A stretch of 59,334 bases of DNA, filler included, from Basidiobolus meristosporus CBS 931.73 (lineage: Eukaryota; Fungi; Basidiobolomycota): assembly GCA_002104905.1 (NCBI GenBank). It is 3 parts of 3 records of this genome, joined end to end, with 100 filler letters (N's around TTAATTAATTAA, not from the genome) between each part and the next. Parts side by side here need not be neighbours in the genome. Positions count along the whole stretch, not along the records: positions 1 to 25,045 come from MCFE01000936.1; 2 more parts are not named here. One strand, given 5' to 3'. Of this stretch, positions 1 through 23,922 are shown piece after piece; the stretch's first letter is position 1; every line of letters starts with the position of its first letter. The notes under the pieces were generated by a model. That model did not search any database. It had not been told where the DNA came from and saw only the letters and a program-made list of their open reading frames with translations. Both the position numbers and the translations under genes were made by a program.

Positions 1-1929
1 CTACCACCATATCTCTCTTTAGAAAGCCAAAAGGTAAGCTTGCTCTACTTGATATGCAAGCTGTACCTATACTGACCCCCCCTCCCATACAGCCGTCAAA
101 AAAGATCCCCGTTCGTGTCGTTGTGAACTGTGCCAGAGAAAAGTGGCGAACTTGACTGTCAAGAAGAACACCAGTGTCGTCAGTAAAAGGTATGCTAAAC
201 CCGGACTCTTCTAAACTTCCCACCACTCAACCATATGTTATTTAGACTTGTGTTCGTTCTTCTCGGCTGGGTGTTGTTTGGCTTTCTAGCGTACAAAGCT
301 TCCACCACCAAAATTGAAACCAACATCTGGGATCCTTATGAAATCCTTGGTATTGACCCCGGAGCAACCACGAAGCAGGTCAAAAAGCACTACAAGAGAC
401 TCAGCTTGAAGTGGCATCCTGACAAGGTTAGCTCTGAGATGGCGGAGGAAGCTGAGAGCAAGTTTGTAGAGATCACCAAGGCTTATAAGGTGCTTACCGA
501 TGACGAGATAAGAAAGAATTACGAAGAGTTCGGCCATCCTGATGGTCGTCAATCCATGTCGCTTGGCATTGCTCTTCCCTCATGGCTGGTAGAGTCAGGC
601 AACTCCTTCTTCGTCCTAGCGATTTACGGAGGATTATTCGGGGTCCTACTTCCCCTTTATGTCGGACGCTGGTGGTACAAATCTCTTCGCTATACCAAGG
701 ACAGGATTCTTAATCAAACCATGGCCACGTACTTCAAACAACTAACCGACGACATCTCCCTCAGAGGAATGGTCGACCTTCTGTCAACGAGCGCCGAGTT
801 CAAGGAGGAGGTGCTATTAAAGCCAACGGACGCAGTTGAAGTACCCAAGCTTATCAGATCCATCGAGCAAACGCTTCAGGATCGCGGTGAGGTCTACTTG
901 AAATCCAAGAAATACAGTGCACCTTACTGCGTCAAGGCCCATGCTCTAATTACCGCGTATATAAACCGGGTCCCTGTTCAAGATGCCGGCCTTGCGGAGG
1001 ATCAGCAAGAGATTATCAAGAAGTCCATCCATCTGGTTTTGGGTATGCTTCAGATCTCTACCGCACACAGCTGGCTAGAGACTAGCTTACGCTGCATGGA
1101 GCTGTCTCAGATGTTAGTCCAAGCGCTTCACATCACCAAGCCACCGATCCTTCAGCTCCCATATATCGATGAAGAGACAGCACGAGCGTTCGCCAGAAAG
1201 AAGGTTCGCTCCGTCAAGCATTTTGTGGAATTCCCCAACGATGAAAGGAAGCTTGTACTTCGAGACATTTCGAATGAGAAGTATGAAAATCTTATGAATG
1301 TTGCCATGGATTACCCGTCGGTTCAGGTGCCTAAAGCATACTTCAAGGTCATCGGAGACGACGCTATCACCCCTGGTGCAATTGTTACCTGTGTTGTCAA
1401 GTTGAACTTGACCTCAGCTCGCTACAGAGCCGAACACCCCCAGAAGCCAAGCGATGAGAACGAAGGGGACGTATCCGACGACGAGGTGGATCGCTTCTTC
1501 GCCAAAAAAGATGCCGATAATCTAGCACCAACTCGGATCCATTCCCCTTACTTCCCATTAGACAAAAGACCTTTCTGGTGGGTTGTGATCTGTGATCCTA
1601 GAGGCAATCGTATCATTCTTCCACCCACCAAGGTTAGTAGCCTTGTCTTTGACAAGACTGAAACTGTCAAGTTCCAGTTCCAAGCACCACAGCGTCCCGG
1701 TCACTATCCTTTCACGGTATTCGTGAAGAGTGACTCTCAAGTAGGCACCGATATAAGACGGGATATCCAGCTTCACGTTCAGGATTCTTCGGTTCTTCCC
1801 CCTGAGGAGGAGATTGAGGATGATATTTCCGAGCCTGAGGAGGACTCCATTGCTGGTCAAATGGCACAACTTCGTGCTCAGCAACAAGGTCGAGGAAATA
1901 ACGGGGAGGACACCTCTGATGAAGAATAA
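1..1929 (+). CDS. SEC63: ER translocon J-domain protein Sec63, 5'-partial (exons 1-33, 93-189, 246-1929)
   Basis: TM segment followed by a J domain (WDPYEILG...HPDK...YKVLTD), then the Sec63/Brl domain and an acidic C-terminus. GT-AG introns 34-92 and 190-245 join an upstream CxCxxC exon in frame, so the ORF-track ATG at 235 lies inside an intron. Confidence 0.95.
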
Positions 1930-3557: not shown

Positions 3558-5658
3558 TCACCCGAAGTACGAGGTGCGGCTTGGATCGTTGAAGGTGAGA
3601 GTGGTGTTTTGGCTGGGTGAAAAGGCAAAGTAATCCGCCCCAGATGGGGTCGAGGTGGGTGGCGATAACAGAGACAAACTGAGCTGTCTCCTTGAGCTGG
3701 ATTGGCTGGCGAGAACACCTTCCTTGGAAGTGGAAGGATCAAGTCGTTCGCACCCTGGCGCACCCATCAATCTCCATAACACAGCTTCGTAGCAGAAGAC
3801 AAACTGATGCAAAGTTTGCACCATTGAAAGGCGCTGGTCTCGGAACTGATCCACCGTTTCCGCAATCACGTCGTTTGCGGTGTCCACAGACTTCGCAGCC
3901 AGCGACTCGAGCACCGTGTCAATGGTGCAGAAAGCGCCCGTTCTTCCACATCCAGCGCTGCAGTGGACAACCATGGGCCCAGCTCTACTGGAATGCTGAA
4001 GGTCATGGGCAATGTCGCGCAAAGCCAGTACGCTTGTCGGGTCGGCGGGAATACCGAAGTCTGGCCATCCTATGAATTGGAGCTGATGGATTTTACGCTC
4101 CTCTCCCGTCGAGAGGTTGATTAGCACGAAATCACGTAAGAGGACGGTGCGGTCCGCTTCCAGTGGAAATTGCTCCGAAATCAGCTTCACCTGCATGCTT
4201 TCGCCGTACATCACACTAGATGAAGAGGGGTCTGGCCAATAACGATGACACTTGATACGACCGGCTTCCTCCTCCTTGGTGAGCATCACGATAACGCGAG
4301 AGTTCTGCTCCCAGATCATTTCCCAGAAGTCAGCAAAGGTCGAGGGCATTGGGCCCTGGGTAGCAATGTATTGCTTCTCGGAGTTTTTTCCGCATATGAA
4401 GCTAGCGTTGATGTAATCGGAGTCGGATACAACTGGGTGCTTGAGCCTCACTCTCGAATGCTCGTATGGCCAGATATTGTTGTAGCGATTCTTGGAGCCA
4501 CGTTCGACGCCGGCCGCAATGCTGTAAGGGTTAGCTTTACACACATGATGTGCCTGGGCTATGAGCAAGGACTGGAGTCGCTTCTGCTCTACCTTGTCGA
4601 GTCGCTGGAATAATACGTCAATACTTCACTGATATGGGATGGGATGGAGTCTAAGTTTGGAAGGGTACCTTGAATGTCTGCGACAGCTTGTATTTACCCT
4701 GCGGGTTGTAGGAGACATCGGAAAGGAAGTATGGAATTTCGATATTCAACTTGGATGCAGCATTTGGCGTGCGAACGGCTATGATTTCGCCAAGCTCGCA
4801 AGTGACCTCATGATGGGGCCGGATATTACTGAGGAATGGGTTGATCATGTTATCCATTGGAGTTGGGCAGACCAGAGGCGCTGCCAAGAAGCTCGAAGGG
4901 GATGGCAAAGGCTTGGGAACTAGCGTTTGAGTAGGCTGATCCCGATTGACCTCGCACATATTAGGAAATCTCGCTGTGAACGCACCAAACCCGCCTTTCA
5001 ACCAACCAACGGCCGCTGCCGAGGGTTTGCCAGTGAACTTTCTGGTAAAATATGCTATTGGTGACGTATCGACCACCGCCTCGGAAGATGCATCGCACAC
5101 CACAATGTTGGAGTACTTCTTCCAGTTCTGGAGCGCCTCCCGATCCTTCTCGGTCACTAGAGATTCGGCAATCTTTTCTAGGCCGAAGGACGCGCGCTTC
5201 AGCAGGGTGTTGGGGACACAGACATGAACCGAATTGCGGATGTGAGAGTGGGAATATTGAGCAGGGGATCTCATATCTATCACTAGTACTAGATTGTTTG
5301 TGGTTTGTCCCAGAAGATCAGCTAATGATTCAGGGGTTACCGCCCTAAGGCTGGCTGGTTCCAAGCCAGAATTTGCCGACGCCGAGGCTGCTTTCTCAGC
5401 TGACTTGGCCTTGGACGGCTGCATGCTAGGGAAATTAAACCGCGTAATGGATTCGGGCGCATGCGGTTGCTGGCTCCCGCCTGAGGGGAAGTAGCTTTTC
5501 ACTCCGGAGCCACATGGCGAGGAAGCCAAGGGTGAAATGATTGGCGCATCCAAGGGATTTGTTGAGTGTGACTTATTGGGAGATTTGGCGCTACGCGTAA
5601 AGAACGAGGAGTCCGGGAGTGCGATGTGGTTTGGTTTGTACGAAAAGCCTATGGTCAT
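3558..5658 (-). CDS. Classical protein-tyrosine phosphatase with N-terminal rhodanese/Cdc25-like domain (Ptp2/Ptp3/Pyp-like MAPK phosphatase), about 678 aa; exons 5658-4669 and 4604-3558
   Basis: KNRY, WPD loop (GWPDFG), VHCSAGCGRTG and Q loop (QTLHQF). Rhodanese-like IDMRS...HIRNSVH...WLKGGF. A 64-nt GT-AG intron (4605-4668) joins the two ORFs in frame. Confidence 0.92.
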
Positions 5659-6939
5659 AATCACAGCTTTACTTGATCAATAGGTTGAGTGGCTAATATT
5701 AACAGAGCAAGTACGAGCAAGTACGTACAGCGGTACTTCTCAAAGGAGGTGTTGGAGGAAGTAGGCTATGGATGTCGACGGGAGGGGTGGCAGCGCACTT
5801 TATAATGAGAATCAATCAAGGTCGAGGAGGCAGTGGAACGACGTACGACAAGTGCGATTAATGGAACAAATACGAGGAAAGATATAATATAGGTGACAAC
5901 TGGAGTTGGGGAGCAGCCATCGGGTTATTTATTCGAAACTCAGAGTGAGCGGCGAAGAAGATACGGTCCATAAATGGAGGGATGGATCATTAGAAAATCC
6001 CAAATCTTTCCTGAGGGATTTGTAGTCTCCCAACAAATGATCTAATGTCACCGGATCGAGGCACACCATTGGTGGGTGGGATTTATATATTCAATTAATT
6101 AGATGTGTAGTGTGTCCAAAAGCCATCATTTGAAACAGCTCCTTTTGATTGAATACCACTGTGGGTATTGCACAGTTATAGTATAATAAAATAATCTAGA
6201 GTCTCAGATTAGGATTCACGGCAATCAAGCTTCATCCACCCCAAAAGTTCTATTCTAGGCGGCATATAATGCACGCATTATTGCTCCACTGGACATATTC
6301 CAAGCAAATAACCACTCTTGCGACTTCCGCGTAATGACTGGGTCGCGAGCAACCATCCAGCGCACCTCGCATCGGTGAGACCGGCGGTGGAAAAGCAAGG
6401 GGCTTCATTTCAGCATGCAGAGGGAAGCATGATTATTTATGGTTTGTTGGGTCGATTGCTTTGGCGGATGAGGCGATGGCTATGAATGCGATAAATTGAA
6501 TGCTTTGGCTTCAGGCTGAATGGCCGTTGTCATTATAGACATCGTGTCGAACAATATGCATATTAGCTAATCATCGTGATGACAGGAGACAACAATCAAT
6601 GGTGAGCGGCCAAAAACACCAGGCGGACTGGATTAGGTAATTCCGACGTCACCCACCGTTTTTGGAATCGTTTTTTGAAGCATCCAGTTCGGGGTTTTAT
6701 GGTATCTGGCTGATCAGTATAATCCGAATATTCTAAGGGGCGATACAGCACCCAGCACCACCTCAGTTTCCTCGATTATCATTCACGGGTTGAGGACGGA
6801 TACAATTCAATCACTCAAAGTAAACGCACTCTTGGGCGGGAGCCGGTTGCTTCTTCAACACCCATAAGGTCAGTGTTTGAGATCTCCCCGGCTCTTGACG
6901 TCATAGGAGATGTTAAATCAGGGCTGTCTTGTCCACAGA

Positions 6940-13418: not shown

Positions 13419-13762
13419 TGTTGTAAGAGTCTTGGAGTTATTGGAAGTAATTAGGAGAACAAGTAGATTATGTGGTTCTCACATAATGATTTATTCAATG
13501 TAAAATAGTATTTATACTTTTGCTTGGTCTTGGCATAATAGACACTCAGAATAGGTTGAGGTAGGTCCCATGAACATGTGTGCAAAGTTCGGGGCTGTTT
13601 GGATAACTTATCTAATTTTCATGTTCTGGGTACCTGATATTTTGGTGAACATATTCCAAGTCCCAACAAGGAACTTGGTCAGTAGTCTCTAGGATTTGAA
13701 GGTAATGATTAAAGTGACTAAGTTAGGTGAATATTTAGGTGGAATTCCGAATTTTTGCAACA
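13419..13762 (-). repeat. Copia family-1 3' LTR (344 bp)
   Basis: TGTTG...CAACA inverted termini, adjacent PPT, and homology to four other copies in the window. Confidence 0.9.
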
Positions 13763-13936: not shown

Positions 13937-14285
13937 TGCTGTAAGAGTCTTGGAGATATTGGAAGTGATTTGGAGAACAAGTAGATTATGTGGTTTTCAC
14001 TTAATGATTTATTGAGTGTAAGAGTAGTATCTATACTTTTACCTGGTCTTGGCATAGCAAGCACTTAGAATAGGTTAAGAAAGTTCCCAAGAACATGTGT
14101 GCAAAGTTTGGGGCTGTTTGAACAACTTATCTAATTTTCATGTTCTGGGTACCTGGTATTTTGGTGAAAATATTCTAAGTAAATCCCAACAAGGAATTTG
14201 GTCAGTATTCTCTAGGATATGAAGGTAATGATCTAAGTGACAAAGTTAGGTGAATATTTAGGTGGAAATACAAATTTCTACAACA
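13937..14285 (-). mobile_element. Solo LTR of Copia family-1 inserted into the RNaseH of its own family
   Basis: TG...CA termini and a 5-bp TSD TAATA (13932-13936 and 14286-14290). It splits the KHMDI-RHHF motif. Confidence 0.92.
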
Positions 14286-15782: not shown

Positions 15783-16327
15783 TGTTGTAGGAGTCTTGGG
15801 GATATTGGAAGTGAATGGGCAGACAGGTGGATTATGTGGTTTTCACTTAATGATTTACTGAATGTAAAAGTAGTATTTATACTTTTACATGGTCTTGGCA
15901 TAACAAACACGTAGAATAGATTAAGAAAGGTCCCAAGAACATGTGTGCAAAGTTTGGTGCTGTTTGGGCACCTTATCTAATTTTCATGTTCTGGGTACCT
16001 GATATTTTGGTGAGCATATTCCAAGTCCCAACAAGGAATTTGGTCAGTATTCTCTAAGATCTGAAGGTAATGATCTAAGTGACTAAGTTAAGCCAATATT
16101 TAGGTGGATTTGCAAATTTTTACGACACTAAGAACATGTTTGCCAAGTTTAGGCTGTTTGGACAACTTTGACAATTTTGATGTTATGAGTACCTGATATC
16201 TTGGTGAGCATATTCTATGTAAATCCCAACAAGGAATATGGTCATATTCGCTAGGATTTGGAGGTAATGATCCAAGTGGCTAAGTTAGGTGAATAATTAA
16301 TAGGTAGAATTACAAATCTTTACAACA
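15783..16327 (-). repeat. One full (15783-16127) and one partial (16128-16327) Copia family-1 LTR in tandem
   Basis: Clear homology to 13419-13762. No matching TSD, consistent with deletion or recombination. Confidence 0.85.
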
Positions 16328-17625: not shown

Positions 17626-17730
17626 ATCCCAATCCCAATCCCAATCCCAATCCCAATCCCAATCCCAATCCCAATCCCAATCCCAATCCCAATCCCAATC
17701 CCAATCCCAATCCCAATCCCAATCCCAATC
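17626..17730. repeat. Perfect hexanucleotide microsatellite (ATCCCA)17.5, i.e. (GGGATT)n on the minus strand
   Basis: Read directly from the sequence. Confidence 0.98.
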
Positions 17731-17956: not shown

Positions 17957-20900
17957 CTAGCTTGAATTGGATTCGCTCTTGGATGACCGGGACTCCCCAT
18001 GACGGCGCAAATCCCGTAACTTAGGGTTGTTGACCAGAGTGTATGCCAAATGCCATCTGTTGCGGGCAACCAATCTGCGGCTCTCAAGTCTAGCCGTCAT
18101 GATGGTGATGGATTTCATTTCCTCGACCACATCCTCTTTGTCGCCCACAAGGGCGAATGGTGATCTGATCAGCTTACGCCAGCTGTTGGACTCAATCTTT
18201 AAGGGAGCCTCATGGTGAGACTTGCCCAGCATCAAACAGAGGAACACCATGTTGATTGGATTGTAGTAGTAATGTTCAGAGAGAAGCTAGGAATAAGATC
18301 TGCGTTATCATCCGCACTAACAGGAGCCATTGGGCAAGAAGAATACATACCAATCCCAGGTAGGCGTTGTAGCCGCTATCACTAGATCTGAGGTTGACAT
18401 GTAACACGTTACGATCCACTCTTGAACTGAACATGAAGATCGTGAAGAACGCCTTGATCATTCGTCCAACCCAGCCAGTGATACCGCTGGGAATATGCAC
18501 GAATATGGCCAGGAAAGACCAGTGCATGAATCCATTGCGGCGTCTGAGCCAGAATTTTGTCCCAGGAATGATGAAGATGAGTGTGGTGATCAGCCCGACC
18601 AACTTACTGATGACCCACGAGATAAAGATGGGGAGGAGGAAGGAGAGCAGTAGCCAGCGAACAATGAAGTTTCGAACCGGAATGATCAGAACGATAGCTG
18701 AGATCAGGATCAGGATCAAGAAGAGCTGAATGATCACCACAAGGGAGGCAAAAAAGGCATTTCCGATCGCTGCGCCGTAAAACTTCAGGAAGTCGTTCAT
18801 GCTGATATCGTTGCCCTTCCGATGATGAAACAAAGAATAGTTTCCCAGGCGAAGTTGCACCAGATCGCGTTGGAAGCGATACTTGACTCCAGATGTGAAG
18901 AGGATAATCCCTGGTGCGCAAATCTGTTAGTCACATTCTCGGAAACTACGGCATCAATCTCCATACCAAATCCGCCCACCAAAACACTAAGGAAAGTGGA
19001 GGCTTTCATGGCCAAAAGAACCTTCCCTGCGGTATCCATATCTTCCCCTAATACTCCACCCATCTCGTTGCCAAAAGCAACAGCCTCTGTGACAACACAG
19101 GCCACTGAACTTTGAACAAAATAGTACAGCCGAACCACGAGATATATCATTACTTGCATGATGATGAGTGTGATAGTGGCGAGGGTAAAGTGGATCATAT
19201 CGGGAATTCTGGAAAAAGAACGGCTGAGTCGTTTTGGGATTAGATGCCTGCAAGCTGTCATTACTTACTCGACATAACGGACGATGTCGCGCTTGTATCT
19301 ACGATAACTAAGGACCTCTCCGGGATGACGGATCGTAGCGAAAAATCCAGGTGGGGATTTGTCATCCTGGAACTCCATTTTCCTAGCAACTAGCATACTT
19401 TTGACATACTGAAAGTCAGAAGAATAGGCAAGTACCGCCTCTTGAGATCTGGAAGCTCTTGCGGAGAACATGCAGGCCAGGAAATAGATGATCAAAATGA
19501 AAGTAAACAGCACAACCGGAACGTTGGACATAATCGTTGTGATTCTTCCAAAGCCCAATTCCCGGTAATAGGCTTCCACAATATTACCAATGTACTGGAG
19601 AAACAACGCAGCGGACACGATGACACCCAGGATGCTTCCAAGTAGTTTGTGCGACTGCTCGTAGCACAGGAAGAGTGGATAGAGAAGTAACCCGTTCCAG
19701 AGCAGCAAGAGGATCAAGAAGAGACCTTTGGTGTACTTCGCAACTGTGGGGTCCATGTTTAACATTATCTGAAAGCGATTTTGACCACTCGCAATCTCCA
19801 TTGCGGATACAAAAACCAACTGTGCTACGATCCCGAAAAGGACGATGGATATGCGATTATCTTTTCGACGTTTCAGCAAGTTGATTGGGCTGGGAATACA
19901 CCCGAGTTAGTCGAATCGTACACGGCAAAGCATCATTGTTCTCTCAACTTACATGGGAAAGGGAATATTGTTGCGTCCGAAAATGAGGATTAGAAAGGGA
20001 ACAACTATGATGGCTCCCATTGATACACACATGGCAGCGACCGAAACTGCAGAGCATGATTAGCGGAGTTGGGTGACTTCATTAGATGTAGTTACAGCTT
20101 ACTGTTCTCGAAGTGCTTCACTATATAGGCATCATAGTAGGCTTGTTCAAGGTATAGCACGAATCCATTAAAGCACTTCACGCCATGGCTTGATGCTTGT
20201 AGGATGAGATCAATGGAGCGGGTGTTCGGAGGCACCTCGAAGGGTTGATAAGACTCGATGGGCCACGAATCACGATTCAACCCTTGTACTTGATCAATAA
20301 CGGCGTTGTTAGCATCGTAGAAGGCCAGGGTTAGGTTCGTGTCCTTAAAGCTATATGCAGTGCTAATGGCAATGATCGATTCAGAAGAGTAGCGGATTTT
20401 AGCCACCTATTAGTGTAATTAGTATCGAGAGAATCTCAACGATCGCCACAGGATGCACCTACCATGAGCCCTTTATCTATCTTTGAGATGAACGGAGCTA
20501 TTTTTTCTTTACCGACTGTTTGTTTCAGCTCGATCAAGCTCTCCTGTGCAGGCGGATTTGGCCGAATTGCTGTTGCAGAGCAGCAGACTATTCAGGGCGA
20601 AGATCCTATTTAGCGTACTCGTGGGGCGAATATGAGTTATGAGCACAACACTTACGGCCATTCAACATTATCCATTCATCATTTTTGAACACCCACGGTG
20701 TATTCGGAGCGTCTAAATCGCAACGATCAGAGGGAAGCATGTTCTTTATCCTTGACATCAATACAGTTAATACTATACTCGCAACTGACGATCTACGGGT
20801 GCTTACCCCTCAGAGTTCACTTGGCATTGCATTAAGAAAAGGTCTACAGGGAATTCAAGGCTACTTAATGGACAGTTCAAAAACGGGTCTTTTTCATAAG

Positions 20901-20995
20901 CAATGCGTACCTGCTTCAACCAACGGTGCTAAAACAACACAGAATACAATCGAAAGCCAGAGCAGCAACGACATCTTTTCAGTCATATTTCTCAT
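17957..20995 (-). CDS. STRA6/RBP-receptor-like polytopic membrane protein with signal peptide and an extra N-terminal ectodomain, about 830 aa; exons 20995-20911, 20843-20807, 20750-20656, 20587-20463, 20406-20103, 20046-19953, 19889-19269, 19208-18967, 18910-18351, 18286-17957
   Basis: Nine GT-AG introns (56-68 nt) with consistent phases give one open frame of 2493 nt. STRA6-like motifs: PIPINLL...RISIVLFG, QLRLGN, SRVDRNVL...DSGYNAYLGL..EHYYYNP, ARNRWHLAYTLVNNPKL. Many hydrophobic helices. Confidence 0.85.
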
Positions 20996-22419
20996 CTACA
21001 GTAGGGCCAAGTAGCCTGTGTTCTCTGCAGGTAGGCAAACCGTCTGAAAACTGTCAACAACATCAACGCTCCCGGTGTTTTATATCCCCAGCTTCTGATA
21101 AATCTGGCTGAAAGTTGTATTTGCATCATGATGTTAATCCAGTATCGATTCATATATGGTAGTAATGCAAGTGTTGTTTCCTAAACCAAATGTCTTTAGA
21201 GTTTGAGTAGCGTAGAAATACTGGACTACTGCTATGAGTAGCCTGCTTAAAACCCGGCTCTGCACAAGATACTTGCAGAATACAGTTACTCAACCCATCA
21301 GTATCGCCGCATCTTCCAAATAATGCCCCATGTTAGCGCTTCAATGTTACCTTAACCTTAATTTCTGCTCAGTGTGATTGGTAATCTCAGCTTAATGGGC
21401 TTCAGCCTAACACCAGGTCGCACAATCCTTGTAGTAGAAATAATATTTGCTTAATTGTTTCCCACATAATAACTCACGGATTCTGGGATGTATGAATCTA
21501 GCGCTTCCGGCACAGCAATTTGTCCCCAACACCTAATTTTGGAAATTGGGCCTTGTGGTGAAGCCAGACTTTGCCAGGATATAGGCTTCATCATTGGTTT
21601 GTTGGGATCCGTGTTTGTAGCAAATATAGTAGTAATTCTAACCCCCCCATGATCCACCACCTTACCAAGGTCTTGATTATTGATCCCCTCAGACAGATCC
21701 TGCAGAACCTTCTTTGATCACAACAGTTTGACCAAACCAACCGTGGAGATGTAAGCAATATAGAATGTGTCTGTCTATGATAAGCCCATCCAACAATTTT
21801 GTCTGCGCGGTCATGGTGACAAATCAGCTGATGTTCAAACCCTCAGAGATGCAGCAATAAAAGTCAGTTCAGTACGTTTCAAGTTTCTTGAGTCACACGA
21901 GTGCTTTATCCTCTTTCATGACCAAGGCGGGTCATGATGAGTGACAACTATCAGGATGACTTCTCGTACCAGTAGGTGTATTAGATGCGTCGATGTTGCG
22001 GGTATACATCCAAATTAGGAGAATGACGCTCTTGTGCAAGAGCAATTACTGATATGTAGCCAACTGACTCGCAGTTACCGATTATTTACCACCCAATTTT
22101 CATTTGCATCCAGATGGTCAGGCGAAGGCACATGTGCTAAACACACGTAACTTCTTACGGTGAATAAAGCGGATGTGTCCGCTAATTAATTCGTTCTTTG
22201 CTGCCGCAAGGGACAATCTAAGTAGTATCGCCAGATTCTTTTTCACCTAGTAATTATATGAGAATATGTTGGATGTCGCCTCAGAGAGAAAAAGAAAATA
22301 TATTGTCTGTAAATTGTCGCCACGGTACATAAACGAGACTAAGCTACTGCTGCTAAGGGACCTCTAGTGTATTGAAATCATTACGAAGTCAAATGGTTGC
22401 TTGCGCTAGGCACGAGCCT

Positions 22420-22923
22420 CAGCCTTTAATGGGGCTTCGTTATGAGACTATCCCAACATCTAGCAGGAGGGCACCATATTGTTTGGGTTGCAGTTGAAAT
22501 ATTCAGAGAAGCCGGAAATAGAATCTGTGCTATCGTCCGCACTAACTGGAATCTTTGAACTCAAAGAATACGTACCAATCCCAGGTAGGCATTGGAACCG
22601 CTTGGCATTAGATCTGGGTTTGGCATGTAGCACGTTGTGATCCGCTCAGGAGCCATGCCAGGAGGATGTGAAGATAATCTGGTGCATATGTCCAACACAA
22701 CCAATAAAACTACTGACGATACTTCATAATCTCAAGAAGAAAGAGAAGTATACGGGTTCCGTTCGGTGTTTGAGCCATATTTCTGCCCCAGGAGTGATGA
22801 GGAGCATGGTTGTGATAACCAGGGCCACCTTACTGACAACCCACGAAGTGAGGAGGAGGTGGAAAGTGAGGAGAGTAGTAAACGGCAATTATTGAGGCTT
22901 CGTACCCGTAAAATTCTAACCAA
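22420..22923 (-). pseudogene. Degenerate tandem duplicate of exons 9-10 of the STRA6-like gene
   Basis: Translates as WVVSKVALVITTMLLITPGAEIWLK...DHNVLH...NAYLGL followed by an intron at the same position, then EYFNCNPNNMV. Colinear with 18190-18690. Contains stops and a frameshift. Confidence 0.75.
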
Positions 22924-23579: not shown

Positions 23580-23922
23580 GGTTGTGAATCTTGTAACTAC
23601 ACCTAAACATCCACCTAACTTAGTTACTTAGATCATTGTCTACAAATCTTAGTGGACTCAGGTCAAATTCCTTATTAGGATTTAAAAATTATTTTCACCA
23701 AAATATCAGATACCAAGAACATGAGAAATCAATAAGTTGCCCCAACAGCCCCAAAACAAGCACATATGCTCTTGGGACCTTCCTAAAAATACTCAAGCAT
23801 TTATTTTGCCAAGACCACATAAAGGTAGAAATACTACTTTTGCATCCAATGGATCATTGAGTTGAAATTTCATAATCTATTTGTTCTCCCAATTACTTCA
23901 AATATCTCCAAAAATCAAACAA
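23580..23922 (+). repeat. Diverged Copia family-1 LTR in the opposite orientation
   Basis: Reverse-complement homology to 13419-13762. Followed by a degenerate GGTTATAAGCAC PBS-like motif. Confidence 0.8.

Follow-up and report, generated by a model that had tools for sequence, protein, structure and literature searches.

Animal STRA6 relies on a separate soluble lipocalin, RBP4, and we know of no RBP4-type lipocalin partner in fungi. STRA6 has been called animal-specific, and the literature describes it as a receptor that requires a separate carrier protein (PMC5977736). Here we ask what stands in front of the STRA6-like core encoded at a locus of Basidiobolus meristosporus CBS 931.73, and whether it could serve in place of a carrier. 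The window is the whole stretch of DNA analyzed, 59,334 nucleotides in which parts of three records of this genome are joined end to end, and all positions are counted along it. A sequence-only reading had proposed that exons 1-5 encode a signal peptide and a soluble segment with five Cys before the first transmembrane helix (TM1), and that the fungal protein may unite carrier and channel. The account that we consider probable, if far from certain, is that positions 20103-20986 are the first five exons of a ten-exon fungal STRA6-family gene, and that the ectodomain they encode is a tethered extracellular binding module.

Gene model and STRA6-like core

The gene occupies 20986..17957 on the minus strand; its ten exons are separated by introns of 56-68 nt, GT-AG throughout, and the spliced frame is open over 827 codons. 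A look for RNA runs listed none, and the splice junctions and the 5′ end are therefore placed by comparative evidence and by the public models of the gene. Exon 1 (20986..20911) contains the start codon and, as judged from hydropathy and from a paralog in the same genome, a signal peptide of ~25 residues, and it ends in phase 1. Exon 2 (20843..20807) is a 37-nt micro-exon with GT-AG flanks that supplies C32, the first of the conserved Cys. Over its 11 whole codons the encoded protein does not differ from that of the paralog, the DNA is 86% identical, and the B. ranarum protein P0001 also matches. The sequence-only reading had the features of these exons where we find them, while its start Met needed correction: the conserved ATG is that at 20986, four codons upstream of that Met, the ATG at 20995 is not kept in the paralog, and the micro-exon is required. 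An alternative N-terminal model of four exons (model B), in which exon 1 is joined to an acceptor at 20784, was rejected because it requires a 126-nt intron and drops the micro-exon, which the paralog has in identical form and P0001 has as well.

The next three exons encode the remainder of the ectodomain. Exon 3 (20750..20656), which is included in the public model of this gene, carries the second conserved Cys (C48) and the invariant W57 and W64, and exon 4 (20587..20463) the Cys-Cys pair C71/C72 followed by the first strand and helix of a predicted sandwich, with AlphaFold pLDDT of 70-85 there. Exon 5 (20406..20103), a 101-codon open frame, contains the bulk of the predicted beta-sandwich, along with C189, the last of the five Cys, and a sequon for N-glycosylation; its strands, as placed by alignment, have predicted pLDDT of 70-92 in two AlphaFold models.

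Exon 6 (20046..19953) contains TM1 of the STRA6-like core, seen as a hydropathy peak at residues 217-235. Exon 7 (19889..19269) covers the TM2-TM5 region, is 60% identical to P0001 and on its own matches PF14752 (RBP_receptor) with E 1e-10, scoring 41.4 bits where the cut-off is 25. Exon 8 (19208..18967) is core sequence collinear with P0001, P0002 and P0008, and exon 9 (18910..18351) corresponds to PF14752 profile positions 388-525 and aligns to zebrafish STRA6 (5sy1). Exon 10 (18286..17957) encodes the C-terminal cytosolic part, with a calmodulin-binding-type helix, up to the stop, and matches profile positions 537-605 (E 1.9e-07, 30.7 bits). The relatives score higher (P0001, 106.8 bits; P0003, 55.1; P0004, 145.7). 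Hydropathy suggests ~nine hydrophobic segments after residue 216; the zebrafish structure 5SY1 has nine TM helices and an intramembrane helix, and the sequence of its CaMBP2 peptide has also been quoted (PMC7154012). The family profile aligns to the zebrafish stretch that yields this peptide, with several identical residues, so that the C-terminal helix appears to be conserved at the level of sequence.

The core as a whole matches PF14752 over profile positions 43-605, and the match begins at positions 43-47, which correspond to fungal residues 244-269. Against zebrafish STRA6 the family profile gave E 2e-17 over residues 120-635, with zebrafish residue 120 falling at family-profile position 307. 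Since the zebrafish protein thus aligns ~187 residues later, the N-terminal domain is an addition to the animal plan; animal STRA6 lacks the ~190-residue domain, as the sequence-only reading had supposed.

The ectodomain and its predicted fold

The product starts with a cleavable-type signal peptide, followed by a conserved 189-residue hydrophilic domain that runs straight into TM1. By hydropathy there is a single N-terminal hydrophobic stretch, at residues 5-23, and residues 26-214 nowhere exceed 0.86 on the Kyte-Doolittle 19-residue scale, indicating that they contain no membrane helix. Together with the open spliced frame, this bears out the proposal of a signal peptide and a soluble segment before TM1. 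The five Cys that had been noted in this segment are all among the sixteen positions that are invariant in a six-sequence alignment, and the domain also contains two N-x-S/T sites. From topology, given the signal peptide, the invariant Cys, the sequons and a basic cluster directly after TM1, we infer that the ectodomain lies outside the cell, above the outer face of the STRA6-like core. In animal STRA6, the outer face is the docking site of retinol-binding protein.

Two independent AlphaFold models, of members that are just 22% identical within the domain, gave the same strand-helix-sandwich arrangement, in which the C-terminal two thirds form a beta-sandwich with pLDDT of 70-92 and the first 65 residues fall below 50 (mean pLDDT for the ectodomain models, 57-60). 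The second model was of the most divergent member and was built from a larger alignment, and its Cys-rich first 65-70 residues were still not resolved. Foldseek returned lectins, carbohydrate-binding modules (CBMs) and Fbs1 at borderline E-values of 1e-4 to 1e-2, with Fbs1/FBA at 8e-4 to 1e-2 for models whose first 65 residues are unreliable. VIA-align matched Fbs1 (2e33) with Z 8.9 and 8.0 over 119 and 144 aligned residues in the two models, Fbs2 (8zuh) with Z 8.2 and 7.9, and many entries of CBM4/15/22/28/61 with Z 6-7.6; a Z of ~8 is described as common in this method for models without a true match. Language-model features of two divergent members ranked FBA first among named clusters (0.88 and 0.84), followed by DUF642, CBM_4_9 and GalBD_like.

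With E allowed up to 10, no Pfam profile, the FBA profile PF04300 included, matched exons 3, 4 and 5 of this gene or the ectodomains of its relatives P0001, P0003 and P0004, and an ectodomain profile found nothing among PDB sequences at the same limit. Lipocalins are eight-stranded beta-barrels with a central ligand cavity. Both models are two-sheet sandwiches rather than eight-stranded barrels, and no lipocalin, NPC2 or START-type fold was among the 50 matches listed in each of four PDB searches. The AlphaFold and Foldseek comparison that the sequence-only reading had suggested yielded a sandwich with lectin, CBM and Fbs1 matches, while the scores are borderline, no lipocalin appeared among the matches listed and the first ~65 residues gave no fold. 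With moderate support, we predict for the C-terminal two thirds a strand-helix-beta-sandwich that resembles galactose-binding domains; the matches behind this are of borderline strength, and may be read as a galactose-binding-like or FBA-like lectin or as a seipin-like sandwich, not as an RBP4-type lipocalin.

A binding role for the ectodomain is plausible on these models. The signal peptide would route the protein into the secretory pathway, so that the domain would face outward above the core as a tethered binding module. Its target would most likely be a glycan or glycoconjugate displayed by the cell wall, by a host or by a food surface; alternatively, the domain may hold a ligand beside the transporter's entry cleft. 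In either case it would do in cis the job of the separate soluble partner of animal STRA6. The fungal protein may thus combine carrier and channel in one chain, which, given fold evidence that is borderline and non-lipocalin, we regard as an idea rather than a finding.

Among the other explanations, the one that survives best, which we nonetheless consider unlikely, follows the carrier idea of the sequence-only reading: the domain would be a sandwich that handles lipid while tethered to the core, taking up a hydrophobic ligand (a retinoid, a carotenoid product or a sterol) and passing it to the outer cleft. The lumenal domains of seipin, a sandwich that handles lipid beside the membrane in a comparable way, were the top VIA-align match of both models (6mlu_B; Z 9.1, rmsd 3.4, 120 aligned residues, and Z 9.4, rmsd 2.5, 111 aligned residues), and 9c8d_A (Z 7.5 and 8.8), yeast Sei1 (7oxp; Z 7.9) and GOLD domains (Z ~7) were matched as well. 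Moreover, the predicted sandwich ends ~20 residues ahead of TM1, which would place it at the membrane surface. However, the seipin matches have sequence identities of 6-13%, their scores tie with those of lectin-type sandwiches and lie near the VIA-align background, and the language-model features favor galactose-binding-like families over lipid binders; the absence of lipocalin, NPC2 and START-type folds from the PDB matches listed above also counts against it.

It is less likely again that the domain binds no ligand and is a structural cap for dimerization, gating, folding or trafficking. Most invariant residues are Cys, Trp, Pro or hydrophobics of the core, as is typical of fold maintenance, and no conserved polar cluster of the kind that marks a binding site was recognized in the alignment of members. 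A word-based search of 5.8 billion proteins with the ectodomain alignment recovered only a 119-aa fragment of the paralog, with no free-standing or shuffled copy, so that the domain is seen in this family only; the same kind of search returned P0001 alone for the P0001 ectodomain, and, among a set of candidates limited to 8000, P0001 and P0008 alone for the full-length family alignment. Against a purely structural role, such a search works by shared words and is therefore of limited sensitivity, conservation among members just 22-25% identical suggests a selected surface, and the great majority of such sandwiches serve in binding. A tethered binding module remains our preferred reading.

Domain and core in the paralog and in other fungi

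The paralog (L001/L002) is collinear with this gene and retains the six N-terminal exons and all splice sites; at the junction of exons 5 and 6, donor, acceptor and phase are all conserved. Its exon 1, at L001 4622-4697, is conserved together with the start codon, and the public 119-aa model P0009 starts there too. Between this gene and the L001 paralog, identity is 64-86% in exons and 52-70% in introns, indels are confined to introns, and mismatches amount to 0.26, 0.18 and 0.42 at the first, second and third codon positions; the coding signal of the N-terminal exons exceeds chance.

Public annotations capture this architecture in part. The public model of our gene, P0008 (715 aa, annotated with PF14752), already joins exons 3-5 to the core, while it omits the signal-peptide exons and removes three in-frame pieces. 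In the paralog, the region is split into two genes, with a 119-aa one built from exons 1-4 and exons 5-7 in neither. Family surveys built on such defective annotations would miss the architecture.

The domain also stands ahead of the core in two B. ranarum paralogs, in Paraphysoderma sedebokerense and in two environmental contigs, which with the two B. meristosporus paralogs make up the relatives found. Domain and core are in one protein in P0001, P0003/P0007 and P0004, and independent public models in three species join the two. The environmental contig L003 holds the end of the domain and TM1 within a single open frame (1111-1461), and L004 has the Cys/Trp pattern and the sandwich exon upstream of the core; the metagenome scan used the core alignment, and L006, a short weak core match, was left out. 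That other fungal homologs share the domain, one of the checks suggested for this locus, is thus answered in the affirmative, and the arrangement of domain and core is common to every fungal-type relative found.

It is consequently very improbable that exons 1-5 are a separate upstream gene for a small secreted protein wrongly fused to the STRA6-like gene: readthrough past the exon 5 donor does stop after three codons, the paralog annotation does contain a separate gene, and the exon junctions are placed from comparison and public models, but the conserved junction and phase, the models of three species and the uninterrupted frame of L003 all argue for one chain, the 119-aa model assigns exon 5 to no gene, and a core without exons 1-5 would have no route to an N-out TM1 that fits the family pattern. 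The evidence from the paralog, P0008, P0001 and L003 accords with the earlier claim of a fusion in front of the core and supports the view that the N-terminal segment is a genuine secretory-pathway domain, conserved and carried on one chain with the STRA6-like core.

Implications and comparison with known systems

Our results point to a small fungal clade of STRA6 relatives, all with a conserved secreted-type, predicted N-terminal beta-sandwich that lies outside Pfam, which raises the question of what a STRA6-type channel carries in organisms without RBP. If the domain presents ligand, these proteins would offer a simpler, single-chain system for the handover of a hydrophobic ligand from a protein partner to a STRA6 core. 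A bolder and doubtful proposal is that some early-diverging fungi (Basidiobolus, Blastocladiomycota and environmental relatives) own a self-contained uptake device, in which a lectin-fold ectodomain fused to a STRA6-type channel might pick up from a host, an alga or gut contents either a glycoconjugate or a particle that bears a retinoid or carotenoid, and feed its lipid directly into the channel, replacing soluble RBP. If true, STRA6 would go back to an ancestral opisthokont role in acquiring chromophores or lipids that predates the animal RBP system.

Four known systems invite comparison. The predicted multi-pass core resembles animal STRA6 in fitting PF14752 and in aligning to 5SY1 up to and including the C-terminal helix, whereas the fungal proteins add a signal peptide and ~190 residues before TM1, and the animal protein begins ~45 profile positions ahead of the shared match point. 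The FBA or sugar-binding domain of the F-box proteins Fbs1/Fbs2 (PF04300; 2E33, 1UMH, 8ZUH), a ten-stranded antiparallel sandwich, is similar in size to the predicted beta-sandwich and may share its fold. However, FBA is cytosolic and to our knowledge has no conserved disulfide-type Cys pattern, while the ectodomain described here is a secretory-pathway domain in which five Cys are invariant. Seipin's lumenal sandwich (6MLU, 6DS5, 9C8D, 7OXP) may share the membrane-proximal combination of sandwich and helix and gave the highest VIA-align Z; it is flanked by two TM helices, lies in the ER lumen and assembles into rings, and it differs from the ectodomain in having no sequence similarity to it in the PDB search and scores not above those of unrelated sandwiches. 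Finally, CBMs and DUF642, of the galactose-binding-domain-like clan, provide VIA-align matches and the nearest feature clusters, yet they give no profile match and are usually attached to enzymes rather than, as here, to a transporter.

Gene model and genomic neighbourhood

Reading of the minus strand, together with a listing of GT donors and AG acceptors, gave a gene model of ten exons whose joined frame is open in the window: E1 (20986..20911), E2 (20843..20807), E3 (20750..20656), E4 (20587..20463), E5 (20406..20103), E6 (20046..19953), E7 (19889..19269), E8 (19208..18967), E9 (18910..18351) and E10 (18286..17957), all on the minus strand. The introns are 56-68 nt long and GT-AG throughout. 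The range in which the sequence-only reading had seen a signal peptide and an ectodomain ahead of a STRA6 core, 20103-20995, is exactly that of exons 1-5, and we could confirm the observation. Because E7, E9 and E10, each searched alone, matched the Pfam family RBP_receptor (PF14752), we consider the STRA6-like core to be real. Coordinates, hydropathy and local tblastn comparisons with retrieved loci were based on the joined translation. The queries in database, fold and family searches were single exons or public proteins.

A search with the family alignment recovered the public protein of this gene, P0008 (hypothetical protein K493DRAFT_363692, B. meristosporus CBS 931.73). It equals model residues 42-827 minus three in-frame excisions, so that exons 3-5 are already connected to the core in the public model, which lacks exons 1 and 2. 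Its start inside exon 3 leaves out 20751-20986, the signal-peptide exons, and the excisions, of 23-25 codons each and in frame, lie at 19736-19810, 19367-19435 and 19085-19153. The excised pieces are kept in the Basidiobolus ranarum protein P0001 and in P0002, a public model of the B. meristosporus paralog. Both the excisions and the missing exons are probably annotation artefacts. Proteins of this family have public database entries already, and part of their annotation is faulty.

Part of a second STRA6-like copy, now decayed, lies at 22382-22846 (minus strand), ~1.4 kb upstream of the gene start. It corresponds to model residues 629-765 at 36% identity, is interrupted by several in-frame stops and was probably left behind by a tandem duplication. 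A perfect hexanucleotide microsatellite, 17.5 copies of ATCCCA as read on the plus strand (17626-17730), lies some 230 nt past the stop codon. Copies of a dispersed repeat of ~100 nt, which may be a small mobile element, sit downstream of the gene, in a stretch rich in AT and poor in ORFs (13596-13661, 14080-14189, 15924-16026 and 16155-16229), with one copy upstream (23691-23786); the repeat also occurs on the paralog contigs, at 940-1053 of L001 and in L002. Neighbouring open frames match Sec63/DnaJ (235-1929, plus strand), protein-tyrosine phosphatase (3558-4568, minus) and a rhodanese domain (4651-5664, minus), of which the last two may form one gene. These are unremarkable housekeeping neighbours, without an obvious connection to the STRA6-like gene.

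Ectodomain and core in relatives

An exhaustive HMMER search with exon 7 returned only six relatives, three of them full-length: P0001 and P0003 (isoform P0007) of B. ranarum, and P0004 of Paraphysoderma sedebokerense. In these three the exon-7 match begins at residues 254-279, so their N-terminal parts are of comparable length. All three start with a hydrophobic leader, and their N-terminal parts can be aligned with window exons 2-5.

The paralog, found on two contigs (L001 4622-7650 and L002 4142-7170), is collinear with the window across all six N-terminal exons, with every splice site and phase preserved and the joined frame open. Identity is 64-86% in exons and 52-70% in introns, gaps are confined to introns, and mismatch rates at codon positions 1, 2 and 3 are 0.26, 0.18 and 0.42, a pattern characteristic of a reading frame under selection. 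Of the window positions 20995, 20986 and 20974, it is the ATG at 20986 that aligns with the paralog start codon, and the public model P0009 begins at the equivalent ATG. Public annotation divides this locus between two genes, P0009 (119 aa, exons 1-4) and P0002 (485 aa, partial), neither of which includes exons 5-7; some 700 nt further downstream is an adh_short (short-chain dehydrogenase) gene on the other strand.

Two AT-rich, intron-bearing eukaryotic contigs from environmental samples, L003 (JGI sample 3300013307) and L004 (Ga0209960_1003678), also carry an ectodomain-plus-core gene, which extends the family beyond named fungi. In L003 an ectodomain 34% identical to that of Paraphysoderma (279 columns) precedes the core; one uninterrupted frame, 1111-1461, holds both the closing part of the domain and TM1, with a leader-like frame upstream. 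In L004 the same Cys, Trp and paired-Cys pattern and a sandwich-type exon occur 300-900 nt upstream of the core. Both are deeper branches of the family.

Taken together, the relatives, the paralog and the environmental contigs make it very unlikely, judging from sequence, that exons 1-5 are a separate upstream gene. Sharing of the domain among other fungal homologues, a point the sequence-only reading had left to be checked, was found in B. ranarum, Paraphysoderma and the paralog, in each case ahead of the core. The predicted proteins show a leader, a conserved disulfide-type ectodomain and a STRA6-like core in one chain, in lineages only 22-37% identical. Word-based searches of limited sensitivity, with the P0001 ectodomain and with the ectodomain alignment, found no such domain outside the STRA6-like family.

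Topology, fold and possible function of the ectodomain

By hydropathy, residues 5-23 are the sole hydrophobic stretch ahead of TM1 (217-235). The segment in between, residues 26-214, is hydrophilic and contains five Cys as well as two N-x-S/T sequons; beyond TM1 lies a basic cluster. An alignment of six sequences has sixteen invariant positions, which include each of the five Cys, two Trp and, at the helix, a Pro-x4-Ile-Asp element. These features, and the leader in every member, would place the ectodomain on the exoplasmic side. Such placement agrees with the N-out topology that Kawaguchi 2008 and Chen 2016 reportedly described for STRA6.

AlphaFold models were made for P0001 and the divergent P0004 (22% identical in the ectodomain) from alignments with just seven and eleven rows, of which many were single-exon fragments. 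The models have a mean pLDDT of 60 and 57 and share a confident element (pLDDT 70-92), in which one strand and a helix precede a two-sheet arrangement of six or seven strands; the Cys-rich first 65-70 residues fall below 50 in both. No stand-out fold match emerged for either model from VIA-align, Foldseek or the ESM Atlas. Against 48,161 chains, VIA-align, for which a best Z of 7-8 is usual without a clear match, gave the seipin lumenal domain (Z 9.1 and 9.4), the Fbs1 sugar-binding domain (8.9 and 8.0) and Fbs2 (8.2 and 7.9), and then many CBMs, GOLD domains and phage/viral jelly rolls (Z 6-8). Foldseek listed lectins, CBMs, Fbs1 and seipin (E 1e-4 to 1e-2), and ESM Atlas shape searches gave sandwich modules from proteins of bacteria and phages (TM 0.5-0.76). 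Among the named clusters, FBA came first by language-model features in both members (0.88 and 0.84), followed by DUF642, CBM_4_9 and GalBD_like, all below 0.9 and so leads only. The ectodomain had no sequence-level match in Pfam or PDB sequences. A galactose-binding-like sandwich, closest to FBA and CBMs and with seipin tied, is moderately supported.

The ectodomain is probably a tethered extracellular binding module, more likely for glycans or glycoconjugates than as a lipid carrier; a purely structural role is conceivable. The sequence-only reading had suggested that the protein may combine carrier and channel in one chain; the carrier half of this idea finds no support in an RBP-like fold. 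Lipocalins were absent from the matches listed in every fold search.

Comparison with animal STRA6

The Pfam RBP_receptor profile is built on animal proteins, and its positions 43-47 fall opposite fungal residues 244-269. Position 307 of the fungal family profile falls opposite residue 120 of the zebrafish STRA6 chain 5sy1, an offset of ~187 residues. STRA6 has been called animal-specific (PMC5977736), and our literature search found no paper in which fungal homologues, or these fungal groups, are linked to STRA6 or the RBP receptor. The gene described here encodes a member of the STRA6 family whose N-terminus carries an extra, predicted sandwich ectodomain, a domain with no family entry. At the other end of the protein, the C-terminal helix encoded by exon 10 (17957-18286) aligns closely with the stretch of the 5sy1 C-terminal helix that yielded the calmodulin-binding peptide CaMBP2 (PMC7154012), and calmodulin regulation may thus be older than animals.
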